Assembly: GCF_964204645.1 (NCBI RefSeq)
Contig: NC_134030.1
Span: 8,661,122-8,725,121 of the forward strand
Origin: Tubulanus polymorphus
Taxonomy: Eukaryota > Animalia > Nemertea
Length of the DNA stretch: 64,000 nt
Direction of reading: 5' to 3'
How positions within the stretch are numbered: the stretch's first letter is position 1; each line of letters begins with the position of its first letter. The notes below the pieces were generated by a model that was not told the origin of the DNA, did no database searches, and saw only the letters and a list, made by a program, of their open reading frames with translations. The position numbers and the translations under genes are program-made. Shown piece by piece: positions 181 to 63,617 of this stretch.

Positions 181-3138
181 AACCTGCTGTAACGTTGACA
201 GAACCATATCTTACGCGCGATAAAGGTGAGGAAATAATCCGGTATGATTAAGAAAATAAATTATCATTAACATAATCATTATTGATTATTCAGGTCAAAG
301 CTGTTGTTGTTATCTATAAAAAGATATCTAGAATAGGAATGAATAAATGGAAGTAATCATTAGATTAGCGATACCGATGATGGAAAGGTATCAACATTTC
401 TCTCAATTTGTAGCATTTTTGCGAGAAAAGTTGGAAAGAAGTTTGAATCAAAGGAACATTACTGACGACGAGAAAACAGGTGCGCGCGTTACAATGTCTT
501 TCTCGTGCTTTCCCAAATGCCTATTTCAAGAACGGTATTTTCTTAAACGATTCTCATTACAGAGATATTGACGCTTTTAAGATGGGAAGGAAATTGGATC
601 GAATGGAATAGAGTGGTCTGCATTGATAATGCTGGTAAATATTGTACGCCAACATTTATGAGGCCTTCTTTTAAAATCTATGTACCGGTATGTTAATCTA
701 TGCAACATAGACTTTAAGTGTTACTTTCTGGCAGAAAAGACAGACTTAATGATTTTGCTTTTCGATTGAAGTTCTCATTTCGCATACATTTTAAATGATA
801 TATACATGTATAATACCTATTCATGAAAATCTTCTGTTTTAAGTAAGATTGATTGAGCGAACATTAATGGAATATTCCGCTACAGCCAACAAAAAGTCAC
901 CGGGTAAATTTAGCATTTGTTTATTTCTCATTTTAAGCATAATTATAACAACAACAAAGAGGATATTTTTGTCATTTTCTTTTATAGATGTATTAAAAAC
1001 AATGGATCAGTTACTAACTCAAGAAACTGAAGGTGATTCTGACATTAAATATATGTACACAGACAGGCCCTTGAATCAATTTTTAGGATCCCTTTACCTT
1101 TTATTGATATTTCCATCCGTAACGATTACTTGTTCTTCCGTACGACTTTCAGAAATCGACGCTTTGTGCAATAGAAATGAGGGTGAGCTTCAATTTTATT
1201 TAGGAATATTTCGTCCGTCTAATTGGCTCTGTTTTCGTCCAGAAATCCCACGCACGATCGTATAGAAAAAAAATTGTTAATTTTTCTTTTCTGTGTTTCA
1301 GTTGATTTATTCCGAAAAAGGGTTATATGCTATAGAGGTTCGTGTAATTCAAATTCTTATTTGTTATCATTAGAAGTTTTAAAATACTTTTGTGTATAGT
1401 TCCATAAAAGTAATTTCAAGATCATATTTTGTTTCAGCTACTGATACAGTAACACGTAAGTTATCAGAAAAATGAGAAAACGTTCGGTTGAAAAATGTAT
1501 CAAAAGCTTGAGTGATCGTTAGAGCATTGATATTGATGCATAAATTATTTTTGATTTATGTACTTGACAGGTAAATACATGAAAACTAGTTGTGCAACTA
1601 TCTTTGAGAATCAAATCGAAAAATTCAAAGGTAAGTAGCTACAGGTCCCTACTCAAAAGAGACAGTGGTTATAGATAAAAAACGCCTCCCATTTCTCATT
1701 TGCTTAAGCTAAACAGAAAAATCTAAATAGATACGAGCGCACTGCATTGAATTTGATAATGTTATAGTAGTGATTAAGTGTTATGTATGATAGTTAGCTA
1801 ACCATGCAGTATCCATCTTACAGAGTTGATAACTGTTATCTTGGATTCTCGAATATCAGAACTGTCGAAACAAGGTAAGTAGGTTTCCTGAAAATGTAAA
1901 TAAAAAACGATAAGATCAATTTTTATTCTAAAAACGCATTCAAAAATGCCATTCTATTGTCAAAATTGTGATGAAAAGTTTTACTTTTTGTAGTTCCTTC
2001 ACATAGTTTCATCGTCAGCAGGATACAGATAGGTACGCGCGCATAATCATCTATTCCCACTCATAGCATATGTCTGTCTGAACTGAAATGGGCCCCTGAA
2101 AAGAAGTATATTTTTATTTCTATATCTTGAATTTTTTTAGACAGTCTTTTAAGAGAGAAAATCATATTTGACCAAGGTAAGTCAGAATTTCATTGTGAAA
2201 CACAAAAGCGATGCTACGTGTAAAGTTTTCAACAGGACAACCTGATATCATTATGCGTGTTAATGCTTTTTCAGCCTCCGTCGATGGAATGCGAGAAATT
2301 ATAGGTACGTACATGATACGGATCCTCTTTGCATAATATGTGTGCTAATTGCACTAGGATAATAACTCATAATTTATTTCCAGACGATCGCATTCGTAAA
2401 ATCCAAGGAAATGGACGAGCCGATATAGGTATGAACAACTAAAAACTGTGGCATTGGTTGAATCTTTTCACTAACTACCATAGGCATCCCCGAGGGGGAA
2501 GGTTAAGTTAAGTTTATTTTGCAAAAAGGTTCGAGGATGCGAACGCCCCTCTCTTTTGGAATAATGAAAAATAGTTTTTTACCTCATAAATTACGCCGGC
2601 TACTCCAAACTTCGTACACCAAAATCTAGCAGCCATTCTTTTTCATTAGTAAAAAGCCTTATCGGCAAAGTGTGGTACAATCTTTATAGTGGAAATAGCC
2701 ATTTTTAAGGGAATTCGGCCCCTCCCCTGGAAAAAGAAACCGGGACGCTCATGTTTACCAATTCGCTCCCCGAAGTTTTAATGTACACTTTTTTTATTAA
2801 GATTTATTGGACGATTTAACCGAAGAAAGCGAAGATGGACAAATTGTTCTCAACCACGGTAAAAATTGATTGATTGGAATGATATTCGTTATACTTTCGA
2901 AATGTATTCTATTAAATTTGCCTTCATTTATGCAGCGAATAGGATCGGTTTGAACCTACAAGACGAAATACTGCACTGGGCCTTAGGTAACGAAGGATTC
3001 ACGACAATTTTTACTTTGATATTAAGTCCACTCTCTGTAGGTACACTGAAATGACTATGATATTATGCGCTTTTTTCAGATGATCTCATCCGACAACATT
3101 TATTAGTGTCAAGCGTGAACAGTGTCTATCGAGTATAG
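181..3138 (+). CDS. Micro-exon gene of unknown function, 3' part (5' end probably lies outside the window); about 266 aa visible
   Basis: AG/GT-bounded exons: 181-225, 414-479, 563-634, 844-903, 988-1032, 1153-1182, 1302-1337, 1438-1455, 1571-1630, 1824-1874, 1994-2032, 2141-2176, 2275-2304, 2384-2428, 2802-2858, 2936-2986. All 16 are multiples of 3, phase 1 and stop-free. Exon 3080-3138 ends in TAG. A probable 3'UTR exon starts at 3399, with AATAAA near 3489 and 3759. Confidence 0.8.
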
Positions 3139-4720
3139 GTAAATATAGTTCCAAACAGCACATGATCCTAGAGCAGATTCAGATGGGAGCACAAGAAGCA
3201 CGTGCCTGCCACCATCGAAATTGTCCCGTGCCTTTTTTCGGGCAGGTTTTCTTAGAATTTTCCTGACCGAATGGCGTGGATATTGCCCTTGTAAATAGTA
3301 TGCCCTTTTCATGTCTTTCGTTGTGCTCCTGTCGAAATCTGTCCCTTCATTTTTAGATCAAAATCTACCCTACTAATTGAAGTATTTTCTTTTTTCAGCT
3401 TCAAATGAACGTCATGTTTTTCAAGCCATGTAAAGTTAAAAAAGAATCAAAATATATGCATGTTAATAACTACAATCTCAGTAATGAAAATAAATGTAAT
3501 TTTGTAACTCTAGTTAAGTACCCTAGTTACCGAATCATTGGTGGTAAGTTTTTTCACTCGGATGGATTTATGCTTGGTGGTTCGCAAAAATATCCGATCG
3601 TGAAACCAAACCACGGACAGGATACGAGGACCCATGAATCACCATATGGTAGTTGTGTGGTTGGTACATCGATCATATGCTGCCAACAGCAAATATGCTA
3701 AAGCCTTCAGTTTCCACAATGAATCAATGAACAATCTGGAACACTTCTAGTACTGAATGAATAAAATGATTTTATTTTGTGAAAAATGATACGAATATAT
3801 CATTATATATTATATATAAAATACAGTTGTGAATGGTCCCGGTACAAATTTCTCATAAACTGATGGAAGTTGTGTATAAAAATTTGAGCAATATAAAAAC
3901 ACATGAGCAATAAAATATACGTGTCCGGCTGGCATATACACCAGCTGCTAATGATGGTAGGATGGTAGGCTCTGATTATCTACATAATGTACCTACACTG
4001 AATCGTCTAATGTATAGTCCTCTTAACTACGAAGAGTGGAAATGCTCGCAAGTACTACATGTACGTTTGCTTATTGGCCAAATAGGTTCAACTCTACCAC
4101 TCCCAACCATGGCGAACTTCAGATTTCGTAGTTTGTCGACAAGTGGTTGGAGCAAATAATCGAACGCTTTATAGTTCAATCTTAAAGTATTTCACAGCTT
4201 CAGCCATTCTACATCGACTATACTCAGTTGCGTGGTTTGCTATTTTCGGACTATAGTTCCGACTAACTGACATTCGGTTTGACTTAACTTGCCAAATAGT
4301 CAGTTTACTTAGATAACTGAAGTTCGACCTTACTAAGTTAGACTACAGATGATAAAGTCTGCCGAATTAGGCTACCTTAAAAGGGTATTGTTCAACTCGA
4401 TATAATTAATTATATGACTAAGAACCTATGAAATATACAGAATAAAATGTCATAATCTATACAAAAATACACCGTACAGAATCGCTAATGAATCACACTT
4501 CAGTTATACAGTGGTCCAACATGCATACACCCAGTCACACAAACACATACACGTACATATGTCAAAACTGCAATTTTGAGGTAGGGTTAACCATGCGCTC
4601 TTAATTCGTTTTAGAGTCCATGGGTTAACGTGTATGACTTACTTAAAATCATGTACAGCCATTACCATCATCGAATCAGTATTGGGCAGTGCATTTGGCT
4701 ATTTACACTTTCATAACATA

Positions 4721-9310: not shown

Positions 9311-9875
9311 TGTGTTTTGTATGTTGTATTTTCCTATTTTAAAATTTGTAACTTTATTGAATTTGGGAATCTTATATGTAATGTTTAACATGTTATAAGG
9401 ATCACAGAATTGAATTGAATCGTCTAAGAACAAGTCTTCTGCCCTGGGCATGAAAAGAGCACTTCTACAGCAGGTCCCAGCAAATCTAGTACTAGCAAGG
9501 TGAAGAAAATCAAAACATCAATAGTAACAACATTACGAACCAATGAAACAGCCTCCAACACTTTGTCTTTATAGATGAAGAAATTAATTCTTCTTCTTAA
9601 AACTTTGGGCGATCAGATCACAATTTATCATGAAGCGAACCGTCGTTTATTTTGTGTTAGATGGTGTGTAAGATCAGATTCAATCTGCGATCTACAAAGA
9701 ACGGCAACAGATTTTTCAATGTATTTAGAACGTATGGTATATTTATGAGAATTGGAATTAAGTTACTTAATGGAGATTTAACAATCTAATTAATCGACAT
9801 TTCGTACAACAAATTTCTAACCAATTAAATTCAACCTGACAAAAGATTGTGAAGGTCGCGTGGACCTAGGTAAAT

Positions 9876-9895
9876 ACTTCCGGTTCCACTTCCGG
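9876..9895. promoter_or_regulatory. Tandem ETS/GABP-type sites in a probable bidirectional CDK/AGPS promoter
   Basis: ACTTCCGG at 9876-9883 and 9888-9895, about 70-90 bp upstream of the AGPS ATG and between two divergent genes. Confidence 0.6.
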
Positions 9896-52498: not shown

Positions 52499-53749
52499 TC
52501 AACTGTTTTGTAAGTTTAGATAAAACAACAGATCCTCGATGTTGTTATCATCCTGTTTCAAAATATTCTCGACCTCTTCACGTTGTTTTTCGCGTACTGA
52601 TTTCTGTTTAACTGGTACCTGATGTTGCTGATGCTGTTTCCGTTGCTGATGGTGCGACGACGATGACGACTGTTGCCGCGTATGCCCGCGCTGTAAAATC
52701 GGCACGTCGCCCGATTCACCGATTTCGCAATCGTCGACGTCATTTTTCTCATCTTCGCGAAGCACGGGAACGACGTCGTACAAAATCTCGGCATTCTCCT
52801 GTAGACGATACGCCAGCAATTTCTCGTTGACGTGCACGCTGCATCCGTCGGCCATGATATGACCGACGACTCGCGCAATATTGCGCGCGTCGTCGATACC
52901 GCTGTGCGGTTTACCGATGAATGCCATTCCCAAATTCTCGAGCATCGCGCGTAAATTCGCCTTGGCGAATCCGTAAAAATTACGATACGTCTTACGCACA
53001 TTGACCCACTTGCGCGCCCACCGCGGAAACTTTATCTCCGATATTTGACATTGTTTCTGCATGAATCGACTCATATCCCACGGCCCGTCGGTGACGATCG
53101 CGTACGTCGATGCGCCGTCGTTCGAGCACAGCGAAAGCCATGATTCCATTCGCTGAAGAACGTCGGGGAAAGCGTCGGCGCTGTCGATCACCTCCTGGGT
53201 AATACCCGTCAACTCTGTGCAGAACGGTGACAATTTCGAGTTCTTCTGCGGCCTGCAATATTCGTGAAACTCCGATTCGACTTTTAACGTGTTAGTGTTC
53301 AGCAAAATGGCCGGAAACTCGATTATCTCATGCGGAAAGTTTGTGCCGTTACTTTCCTCACAGGTCGCCTCGAAATCGATGATTACGAGATAATCGTATG
53401 GCGTTTCACGTTTAGTTACGTTCGCGATGCGCGCTTTAACGAGTTTCTGTTTTTTGTACAAATTCTTCAGACGCTTTTTCAGAACTTCTTTCACGCCACG
53501 CGTGTCCATGTGATACTTAGCAAGCTGTTCCCGTAGCTCCAGTTTCGTCATTCTGTTCACTTCGCCGTTCGTCAGCGATATCTGTTTGTAAACGGGATCG
53601 CTGAACGGGCCATCGTAAGAATGCCTCTGATCATCTTTATTGACTGTCCGCTGTGGATTCGGTTTATGTCGGGGTTTCCAGTTATGCACAGTTGCCGCAT
53701 CGGGACCTTCCCCGCAGACATCCAACTGCAATAAGCCTCCTTCTGCCAT
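52499..53749 (-). CDS. ERI1: 3'-5' exoribonuclease 1 (ERI1/3'hExo; SAP domain plus DEDDh nuclease), 416 aa, single coding exon
   Basis: SAP-like MTKLELREQLAKYHMDTRGVKEVLKKRLK, followed by IIDFEATC, HEIIEFP, FCTELTGITQ, TDGPWDM and HSGIDDARN. Probable start is MAEGG at 53749, behind an acceptor at 53768. Candidate 5'UTR donor GTATGT at 54996. Confidence 0.95.
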   Translation of the reverse strand: MAEGGLLQLDVCGEGPDAATVHNWKPRHKPNPQRTVNKDDQRHSYDGPFSDPVYKQISLTNGEVNRMTKLELREQLAKYHMDTRGVKEVLKKRLKNLYKKQKLVKARIANVTKRETPYDYLVIIDFEATCEESNGTNFPHEIIEFPAILLNTNTLKVESEFHEYCRPQKNSKLSPFCTELTGITQEVIDSADAFPDVLQRMESWLSLCSNDGASTYAIVTDGPWDMSRFMQKQCQISEIKFPRWARKWVNVRKTYRNFYGFAKANLRAMLENLGMAFIGKPHSGIDDARNIARVVGHIMADGCSVHVNEKLLAYRLQENAEILYDVVPVLREDEKNDVDDCEIGESGDVPILQRGHTRQQSSSSSHHQQRKQHQQHQVPVKQKSVREKQREEVENILKQDDNNIEDLLFYLNLQNS

Positions 53750-53930
53750 AATAACAAACACGAAAATCTGCAATCGAGAAACAATACATATCAAAACTCT
53801 CATCTCATAAAAAACCCAAAAATTTGAAATAAATTGAATTAAACTTTAACCATCTTAAGGTTAATAGAGCTTTAAAAAAAACAAATCAGAACAACATTCT
53901 TCACGATATGTGGAAAATACATCTGATAGG

Positions 53931-60900: not shown

Positions 60901-60974
60901 CTAATCTGGGCTTCTGCAGTTTTCAACAGCAAATGGGTCAATCAGTATTCATCTACTTGTAGATTTTCTGATGA

Positions 60975-62305
60975 GTTGTTGATCTCAAGCTGGGTTTTTT
61001 CTCATAGTTGATATTTAGCTGCAATAATTAAAAGAAGATATCCTGTTATGACAAAATATTTCAATAAGAATTAATCGTAATAATTCCATGTATATCAAGT
61101 TACCTTTTATGATTGCCTGGTTCGTTATCGGTGTGGATCATCTAAAGTTGGTGGGTTAATGAGTTCAATTCTGTTGGCCTCATCTGTGCGCTGTTCAAGT
61201 TGGTCGATTTTGGACGAGTAGCTGATCTCGAGCTGGGTTTCTTCTTATAGTTGAAATTTAGCTGCAATGATTAAAAGAAGATATCCTGTAATGACCAAAT
61301 ATTTCAATAAGAATTAATCGTAATAATTTCATGTATATCAAGTTACCTTTTATGATTGCTGGGATCGTTATCGGTGTGGATCATCTGAAGTTGGTGGGTT
61401 AATGAGTTCGATTCTGTTGGCGTCATCTGTTCGCTGTTCCAGTTGGTCGATTTTGAACGAGTAGCTGATCTCAAGCTGGGTTTCTTCTTATAGTTGAAAT
61501 TTAGCTGCAATGATTAAAAGAAGATATCCTGTAATGACCAAATATTTCAATAAGAATTAATCGTAATAATTTCATGTATATCAAGTTACCTTTTATGATT
61601 GCTTGGTTCGTTATCGGTGTGGATCATCTAAAGTTTGTGCGTTAATGAGTTCGATTCTGTTGGCCCCATCTGCGCGCTGTTCAAGTTGGTCGATTTTAGA
61701 CGAGTAGCTGATCTCAAGCTGGGTTTCTTCTTATAGTTGAAATTTAGCTGCAATGATTAAAAGAAGATATCCTGTAATGACCAAATATTTCAATAAGAAT
61801 TAATCGTAATAATTTCATGTATATCAAGTTACCTTTTATGATTGCTGGGTTCGTTATCGGTGTGGATCATCTTAAGTTGGTGGGTTAATGAGTTCCATTC
61901 TGTTGGCCTCATCTGTGCGCTGTTCAAATTGGTCGATTTTGCACGAGTAGTTGATCTCAAGCTGGGTTTTTTAACATAGTTGAAATTTAGCTGCAATGAT
62001 TAAAAGAAGATATCCTGTAATGACAAAATATTTCAATACGAATTAATCGTTATAATTGCATGTATATCAAGTTACCTTTTATGATTGCTGGTTTCGTTAT
62101 CGGCGATTATCTTATTAGTTGGTTGGTAAATGAGTTCAATTCTGTTCGCTGTGCGCTGTTCAAGTTGGTCGATTTGGACGAGTAGTTGATCTCAAGTTTG
62201 GTTCTTCTTGATAGCGGAAATTTAGCTGCAATGAAAGATATCCTGTAATGACAAAATATTTCATTTAGAATTTATCATAATAATTTCCATAAAAATATAC
62301 TTACA
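60975..62305 (-). repeat. 243-bp tandem array (~5.5 units); each unit has a - strand splice donor and acceptor
   Basis: AAAAG|GTAACT junctions at 61104, 61347, 61590, 61833 and 62076. ATTGCAG| acceptors at 61018, 61261, 61504, 61747, 61990 and 62225. Confidence 0.9.
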
Positions 62306-63617
62306 TTTCAAGATTGCTGGGTTCAGTATTGGTGACGATCTTCTGAGTTGGTTTGATTCTTCTGCGGGCGATTGGTAGATTTCGTTTGATTGATTTGAGT
62401 TGGTGTCCCTTACAAACCCACCACACCTGCCTGGAGCGAAACAGGCGGTTTTTTTTCAAAATCGGAAATCGAAGTACAGATATAGTTGTGTGATCGGCGG
62501 TCGAGTTTACATAATTTTCTTTCTTTAAATCAAAGCACGTAATTGCGAAATTCGGTTCAGGTTCATTCAAACAATCTTCCATCCAGTCAGAAAGCGACTG
62601 ATTGGGGTTAACTTTTTTTTCTGCCTATTTTAATACATCGAGATTCTGGATATCTATTGGATTATTACGAGATTTTGGATTTGCTTTAGTTTATTAGTCA
62701 CGGACAGTTCATGCACCCCGAGATAACTAATTCACACCATGCACGAGGAAAGCGGTCTATTTGAGTCATTGGGGAAAACCCACTAATACCATGCATTCAC
62801 GATTAATCACCATTCATGCTGTTATCACAATCCCGTCAATAGACAGATTTTCAAAAAACTCCTTGATTCAACTGAGGGGAGACAGGCTTTTTTAATTACT
62901 TGGAGCACCGATCCTCTGAAATTCTGCCAAAAACCTCATGCTAATTACCACTCATAATTTGGAAAAAACAAATGGTTTTCTTTAATTTTGATACTGAATT
63001 AAACGCCGTACATCATCATGTAAATTTAGGAAAGTTCATATTAGAATTCTACTCTTATCCCATTTTTGATTTTGGTCAAAGAATACGGCGGTATCAAATC
63101 ATGCGTACAGGGTCAGTCTGTCCATGAGGATGTGATTAGTCAGACAAGTCATGATTAGGCATTGATGCAATTCACTAAGTGAAAAAGTGCCCTTGCCACT
63201 TTTTCCGCATTAAGTGTTAAATTCTACTTAAGCCTACAAAAATCACGTCATCATTGATGCCGGTCCTCTGATAGAAGAAAAATAAACTCATAAGAAAAAC
63301 CATTCAGTAAATGATAATAATAATATTGAGTTTATTTATAAAAATGCAATAAAAGTGGTAATTTTTAATTTGCCTCGCACAAATTCATACGCTCGCTGCT
63401 GTAATGTGGTCACAATTCTCTGGTGAAATTAATCCCTTTAGTTCCTAATCTATCTTTGTTTCTTGGTGAAATAATGTACGTTCGATATTGACCCTCGCCA
63501 TCAATAACTCTCGCCTTTCTTTCCCGCCACCTGAAATAAAAAAAGAAAGTATTTTTCAGCGGTTAATTATTGATGTCGAAAAGTCTGTAAAACATTCTTT
63601 GAATTTAGAAAATTATA

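Follow-up and report, generated by a model that had tools for sequence, protein, structure and literature searches.

Does a run of very small exons in the ribbon worm Tubulanus polymorphus form a gene of its own, diversifying a protein by exon skipping, or is it part of a more familiar kind of gene? The question is raised by positions 181-3138 of a 64,000-nt stretch (hereafter the window; C6:8661122-8725121 of the 268-Mb assembly). There, a first reading made from the sequence alone had proposed a hidden gene comparable to the micro-exon genes (MEGs) of Schistosoma. These positions correspond to coding exons 9-25 of the RefSeq gene LOC141906835 at C6:8.66 Mb (numbering of isoform X1). They are probably best understood as the 3' half of an ordinary protein-coding gene for a type I membrane receptor of the immunoglobulin (Ig) superfamily, whose cytoplasmic tail of 266 residues is encoded by micro-exons and spliced as one constitutive unit.

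An annotated receptor gene

An Ig exon upstream of the run, searched against a representative protein library, retrieved a public protein of 640 aa at 100% identity, XP_074652363.1. This is isoform X3 of LOC141906835, which RefSeq labels as uncharacterised, the other two being X1 (XP_074652361.1, 742 aa) and X2 (XP_074652362.1, 740 aa). Exact spliced mapping of all three RefSeq proteins onto the window and the sequence upstream of it gave 25 coding exons in X1 and X2, and 23 in X3. The 16 AG/GT-bounded exons of the sequence-only reading, rebuilt mechanically, were recovered with the positions and lengths it had given, all divisible by three and in phase 1-1. Its intron sizes of about 75-370 bp agree with the measured 77-373 nt. 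Its spliced peptide is identical to residues 375-640 of XP_074652363.1, except for the first residue, which had been left as x. An extension upstream for the 5' exons, which it had recommended, recovered a leader, four Ig-sized modules and a transmembrane exon.

RefSeq isoforms X1-X3 carry exactly this exon model, and the claim that the gene is hidden from annotation is therefore refuted. Nor is it a micro-exon gene in its own right, the micro-exons representing 36% of the coding sequence and lying downstream of the Ig and transmembrane exons. A genome search found LOC141906835 to be single-copy at the DNA level. Literature searches brought up no publication that deals with micro-exon tails of nemertean receptors, nor any that covers the annotation of the T. 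polymorphus genome.

Alignment of the three RefSeq isoforms shows identical tails, all variation being confined to the ectodomain. X3 skips both exons of the second Ig module (Ig2) and is left with three Ig-sized modules, while X1 and X2 keep four. X1 differs from X2 by a 6-nt alternative acceptor of Ig3.

Evidence that the micro-exons are real

The criteria on which the exons were originally chained were AG/GT borders, a length divisible by three and the absence of stop codons. In simulated sequences that keep the dinucleotide make-up of the region, these criteria alone yielded 20-31 chained segments per 3.7 kb, and they therefore do not go beyond chance. We consequently list here other signals, beginning with generic splice features that were not trained on the tail exons. 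The pyrimidine fraction is 0.68 at tail acceptors versus 0.48 at other AGs (p = 7e-8), and 15 of the 17 tail acceptors are YAG. Donors match GTRAGT at 4.9 of six positions in the tail versus 3.3 of six in the background (p = 7e-9). All 34 splice signals of the tail are intact and of good quality.

The coding signal is frame-specific. Under a codon model derived from further coding sequence in the neighbourhood, the tail exons have a log-likelihood of +23.5 bits in the claimed frame, versus -122 and -99 in the two alternative frames. Intron fragments from the same gene, matched in size, score -111 +/- 24, which places the tail exons at z = 5.6. The chance of 266 codons without a stop is about 5e-9. 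A splice-aware chain finder returned exactly 16 symmetric exons on the plus strand and none on the minus strand; the same finder returned 0-3 exons when run on both strands of about 68 kb of control DNA, and 0-2 across 300 simulations. Together with the independent RefSeq model, these splice, codon and chain-finder signals confirm that the tail micro-exons are real.

The same evidence bears on the most sceptical explanation, namely that the locus is an unexpressed computational model or a recently dead gene without a functional product. Such a gene would fit the lack of transcript-derived protein fragments in our searches, which also returned no orthologue or paralogue of the tail. However, it would have to retain a stop-free frame across 17 exons, frame-specific codon usage and a complete set of splice signals. 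It would also have to account for the 6-nt acceptor isoform, a kind of detail that typically comes from transcript alignments. We regard this explanation as very improbable.

How the exon run arose was considered as well. The observation in the sequence-only reading that the exons are not repeats of one another was borne out, as summed best pair scores were 308 versus 297 +/- 15 for shuffled exons; internal exon duplication was rejected on the same scores. Introner-like intron gain was also rejected because the tail introns have no repeat in common and are not copies of one element.

Domain order and membrane topology

Phase 1 is found at 23 of the 24 coding introns of LOC141906835, the sole phase-0 intron lying inside Ig2. 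The modular phase-1 organization of the Ig and transmembrane exons is thus carried on into the tail. In Pfam, Ig2 matches C1-set with 22.8 bits (cut-off 21), and Ig3 matches C2-set_2 with 23.8 bits (cut-off 21) and ig with 22.5 bits (cut-off 21.8), while Ig4 has a weak match to Ig_3. The transmembrane helix gives the maximum of the Kyte-Doolittle profile over 19-residue windows (2.18, at residue 450 of X1), and no other such window exceeds 1.8. A cluster of basic residues lies directly C-terminal to it. Two features of type I Ig-superfamily receptors were thus found here, namely Ig domains in the ectodomain and a single transmembrane helix followed by basic residues.

Seven of the eight N-glycosylation sequons precede the transmembrane helix and one follows it. 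The micro-exons lie past the single helix and the basic cluster, with the Ig modules and most sequons before them, and the tail they encode is therefore predicted to be cytoplasmic. The gene product would begin with a short hydrophobic leader, followed by Ig-sized modules (four, or three in X3), one transmembrane helix, a basic stop-transfer cluster and the tail.

An orphan tail

The tail is acidic (net charge -10), with 28% Leu+Ile+Val and less than 4% Pro+Gly, and a hydropathy scan detected no second membrane span in it. A single-sequence AlphaFold model is all-helical, with seven long helices and a predicted local distance difference test (pLDDT) score of 39; the tail is probably alpha-helical, as far as this model goes. 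A correspondence of one exon to one helix was rejected, since the seven helices cover two or three exons each and four of their six breaks fall near an exon boundary, which is about the chance expectation.

A Pfam scan of the tail gave nothing above cut-off. The best matches had E values of 0.007-0.06, including NACHT-associated NCAB1 at E = 0.06, and the two micro-exons long enough to be scanned singly gave no match. Searches of the PDB and of the ESM Atlas with the tail were likewise without a match. Homologue searches in protein databases retrieved solely the gene's own isoforms and one weak match at the Ig level, to a syg-2-like protein from T. polymorphus itself. A search of the worm's own genome with the tail recovered solely its own exons. 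By these comparisons, the tail is an orphan sequence, part of what appears to be a lineage-restricted receptor.

None of the five tail tyrosines stands in the context (S/I/V/L)xYxx(I/V/L) of an immunoreceptor tyrosine-based inhibitory motif (ITIM). Class II PDZ ligands are characterized by a C-terminal hydrophobic-x-hydrophobic pattern. The C-terminus of the tail, -Y-R-V, fits this pattern, which makes it a putative PDZ ligand.

We propose that the ectodomain would bind a ligand or a partner cell, while a helical tail may act as a docking scaffold for cytosolic partners. The tail would be spliced as a single constitutive unit in the transcripts available to the annotators. Its micro-exon build may then reflect the way in which the gene was put together and can change, with in-frame exons added, lost or exchanged at the gene level, and would not be best read as a splicing-based generator of diversity.

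Is the tail a splicing-based diversity generator?

In MEGs, most of the coding region consists of very small symmetrical exons that can be skipped while the frame is kept (PMC4350168). MEG products are found at the host interface, either secreted or exposed on the surface; variants are produced by alternative splicing, and the genes are apparently restricted to platyhelminths (PMC4350168). LOC141906835 resembles MEGs in its run of very small, symmetrical, frame-keeping exons and in its lineage-restricted orphan sequence. However, micro-exons account for only 36% of the coding sequence in X1 (800 of 2229 nt) and 42% in X3 (800 of 1923 nt). They encode the predicted cytoplasmic portion of a transmembrane receptor with four Ig modules, the host animal is a free-living nemertean, and the annotated tails show no variation. 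No sequence relation to MEGs was found, as searches with the tail retrieved own isoforms only. Of the defining features of MEGs, LOC141906835 has solely exon symmetry, and the likeness suggested by the sequence-only reading holds for that feature but fails for coding share, location, taxon and sequence. The locus is thus a correction: a supposed hidden micro-exon gene is the tail of an annotated Ig receptor, and the MEG analogy breaks down both in where the encoded part is located and in how much of the gene consists of micro-exons.

The closest known analogue, which is not a homologue, is vertebrate PECAM-1 (CD31). PECAM-1 has about one exon per Ig domain, a transmembrane exon and a cytoplasmic domain spread over short exons 9-16, of which exon 14 encodes 19 aa (PMC2132561). 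Skipping of its tail exons produces functionally distinct isoforms (PMC2132561). Both genes encode an Ig type I receptor whose cytoplasmic domain is cut into short exons after the transmembrane exon. The present gene has 17 tail exons, of which the first 16 are symmetric phase-1 exons, whereas PECAM-1 has about seven. The PECAM-1 tail carries tyrosine-based signalling motifs; here there is no ITIM-type pattern and no sequence similarity, and no PECAM-like match appeared in the Pfam or homologue searches. Tail skipping is documented in PECAM-1, but it was found in none of the three annotated isoforms of LOC141906835.

These two systems define an alternative in which the symmetric micro-exons would be skipped in many combinations, forming an MEG-like system or a large PECAM-1-like system inside the cell. 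The sequence-only reading was correct that any subset of the symmetric tail exons can be skipped without a frameshift, since each is a multiple of three in phase 1-1. Moreover, 16-17 phase-1 introns in a row would occur with a probability of about 1e-9 at usual phase frequencies (our own estimate), which suggests constraint. Skipping of short tail exons can alter function in PECAM-1 (PMC2132561), and micro-exon 16 can be extended in frame by 54 nt to a second strong donor. Nevertheless, the annotation is fine enough to separate a 6-nt acceptor choice and the Ig2 skip, yet the tails of the RefSeq isoforms are identical, and no shorter tail-bearing proteins were found in the protein collection searched. 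Phase 1 is also common to the Ig and transmembrane exons, so it is explicable by the build of the gene. In addition, a tail inside the cell would escape the kind of selection that has been proposed to act on MEG variation (PMC4350168). Combinatorial diversification by exon skipping is thus unsupported by the annotated isoforms, and we consider it unlikely.

The uniform phase can be set against the exon-shuffling rule, under which extracellular domain-sized exons of metazoan proteins are symmetric phase 1-1 modules. In agreement with this rule, the Ig and transmembrane exons are symmetric in phase 1, and the tail exons keep the same phase. Unlike in the rule, the pattern extends through 16 cytoplasmic exons of sub-domain size without known domains.

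The NCBI pipeline generally reports alternative variants only with transcript-alignment support, and RefSeq isoforms generally reflect RNA sequencing (RNA-seq). If this applies to the present gene, the 6-nt acceptor variant would mean that RNA-seq covers the gene and, therefore, that tail skipping is uncommon in the sampled material. The tail thus appears to be constitutively spliced in the transcripts behind the annotation.

Several points weigh against a receptor with a constitutively spliced helical tail. Constitutive splicing is deduced from the annotated isoforms. A search with the tail alone that admitted short open reading frame fragments from RNA assemblies retrieved no transcript-derived fragment. 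Chance is a very unlikely source of uniform phase 1 over 16 cytoplasmic exons, which could also reflect selection for exons that can be skipped. The N-terminal leader, a putative signal peptide, is only mildly hydrophobic (maximum of 1.35 on the 19-residue Kyte-Doolittle scale). Finally, the helical scaffold role is weak because the model, with its low pLDDT, is poor.

Other micro-exon receptor loci in the genome

LOC141906835 was compared with three far loci, named A, B and C, which lie some 13 Mb away on the same contig (about 21.8-22.8 Mb). At loci A and B, chains of 28-29 micro-exons in phase 1 follow Ig-sized phase-1 exons on the same strand. LOC141906835 has this arrangement in common with both, although a transmembrane exon was not found at either A or B with the thresholds used. 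This resemblance raises the possibility that LOC141906835 is distantly related, with a shorter tail, to the cluster of Ig and Ig-NACHT genes with micro-exon tails in that region. Such a family would have a common origin and a probable innate-immune role, and its variety would come from exon gain, loss and exchange between copies. This reading is compatible with the explanation that we prefer.

The location on one contig and the build common to A and B speak for a relationship. So does an Ig2 paralogue beside the cluster, at C6:22287704 (E = 2e-4, 29% identity), and the Ig exons of all three far loci match Ig2 at 24-31% identity. This identity is, however, at the generic level of the superfamily, and the best Ig2 paralogues in the genome (C6:18.41 Mb and C6:22.29 Mb) are weak, with E values of about 1e-4. 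Summed best exon-to-exon scores against the far loci were slightly above those of shuffled exons (391 versus 364 +/- 10), but this small excess could be explained by a common amphipathic-helix composition. The sub-threshold match to NCAB1 also points towards the Ig-NACHT genes, yet LOC141906835 contains no NACHT module.

Similarity between the tails themselves was not detected. Exon-by-exon tblastn of the tail against the far loci gave noise only, with a low sensitivity for exons of 6-24 aa, and no single tail exon was significant against shuffles. Tail matches with the far loci were not colinear (p = 0.48 and 0.05), and the exon-length series differ. The gene resembles the far loci in having Ig-sized phase-1 exons and then a phase-1 micro-exon run on one strand of the same contig. 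It differs from them in its 17 tail exons, in the lack of tail similarity or colinearity, in having no NACHT partner and in being a single copy 13 Mb off; the own-genome search with the tail also led back to the gene itself only. In terms of sequence, LOC141906835 appears to have the architecture of the far loci without a demonstrable common origin, and we hold membership of this family to be possible but doubtful.

The receptor with a constitutively spliced tail, which we prefer, adds a sequence-unrelated example of an unusual ribbon-worm pattern, in which the cytoplasmic domains of receptors are cut into many symmetric micro-exons. A bolder version would make LOC141906835 a diverged minimal member of a nemertean-specific group of Ig receptors, with tails of interchangeable phase-1 micro-exons that are varied by gain, loss and exchange between genes and by regulated skipping in some tissues. 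We judge this rather unlikely. If such a family exists, it would be a receptor system that varies inside the cell rather than outside. Regulated skipping, if it occurs, would represent the PECAM-1 principle on a large scale, with the choice of tail exons tuning receptor signalling. If there is no skipping, uniform phase 1 over 16 sub-domain exons poses the question of how such genes arise and persist.

At the two sites of the weak Ig2 paralogues, C6:18.408-18.412 Mb (plus strand) and C6:22.282-22.285 Mb (minus strand), the chain finder detected arrays of five to seven successive 42-nt phase-1 exons, which points to a further type of micro-exon repeat beside Ig exons.

Coordinates of the gene

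The exons of LOC141906835 are collected in Table 1. The tail exons have a mean size of 47 nt, and five of the 17 are 36 nt or shorter.

Table 1. Exons and associated features of LOC141906835. Positions are those of the window unless indicated otherwise.
Feature	Position	Strand	Length	Description
Start exon	Upstream of window	+	22 nt	
Leader exon	Upstream of window	+	57 nt	
Ig1 exon	Upstream of window	+	318 nt	Ig-sized, no Pfam match
Ig2, two exons	Upstream of window	+	170 + 136 nt	Split by phase-0 intron
Ig3 exon	Upstream of window	+	324 or 318 nt	
Ig4 exon	Upstream of window	+	288 nt	
Transmembrane exon	9778-9891 of the 10 kb upstream of window	+	114 nt	Phase 1-1; hydrophobic helix and basic cluster
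Micro-exon 1 (coding exon 9 of X1)	181-225	+	45 nt	Phase 1-1
Micro-exon 2	414-479	+	66 nt	Phase 1-1
Micro-exon 3	563-634	+	72 nt	Phase 1-1
Micro-exon 4	844-903	+	60 nt	Phase 1-1
Micro-exon 5	988-1032	+	45 nt	Phase 1-1
Micro-exon 6	1153-1182	+	30 nt	Phase 1-1
Micro-exon 7	1302-1337	+	36 nt	Phase 1-1
Micro-exon 8	1438-1455	+	18 nt	Phase 1-1; version used in RefSeq protein
Micro-exon 9	1571-1630	+	60 nt	Phase 1-1
Micro-exon 10	1824-1874	+	51 nt	Phase 1-1
Micro-exon 11	1994-2032	+	39 nt	Phase 1-1
Micro-exon 12	2141-2176	+	36 nt	Phase 1-1
Micro-exon 13	2275-2304	+	30 nt	Phase 1-1
Micro-exon 14	2384-2428	+	45 nt	Phase 1-1
Tail intron 14 (longest)	2429-2801	+	373 nt	Contains interspersed repeat at about 2533-2735, with copies on other contigs
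Micro-exon 15	2802-2858	+	57 nt	Phase 1-1
Micro-exon 16	2936-2986	+	51 nt	Phase 1-1
Last coding exon (17th of tail)	3080-3138	+	59 nt	Phase-1 entry; TAG stop abuts GT; C-terminus -Y-R-V
Putative 3' untranslated exon	3398-3500	+		Good acceptor at 3397/3398; AATAAA at 3489-3494

An alternative 18-nt exon at 1374-1391 was rejected as a candidate for micro-exon 8. It would leave an intron of 36 nt, is absent from RefSeq and falls below even relaxed splice-score thresholds. Past micro-exon 16, positions 2987-3040 continue in frame and stop-free to the second strong donor mentioned above; their use would add 18 residues, and they are not included in RefSeq.

Neighbouring features

Just past the stop codon lies a 168-nt element resembling a miniature inverted-repeat transposable element (3174-3341), with inverted ends of 21 nt. 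It is followed, 3' of the gene, by an interspersed element of about 80 nt (3524-3600), for which the genome contains 37 further matches at about 80% identity.

On the minus strand, 4.9-7.3 kb upstream of the window, we detected a G protein-coupled receptor of the secretin/adhesion type (7tm_2, E = 3e-25). Its seven-transmembrane frame (300 aa) lies directly next to the frame of a Cys-rich ectodomain (529 aa); the Ig receptor gene is on the other strand.

Within the window, positions 21966-45473 of the plus strand form a stop-free frame of 7,835 codons (23.5 kb) with 23% Asp/Glu. This frame has a strong periodicity of 288 residues (864 nt) that is invisible to Tandem Repeats Finder, and its Pfam matches are sums of many weak short ones. 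Positions 52499-53803 of the minus strand contain a single open frame of 434 aa that encodes a SAP domain together with an exonuclease domain of the RNase_T type (E = 3e-32). Positions 60973-62352 hold 5.7 tandem copies of a 243-bp unit, with 89% matches.

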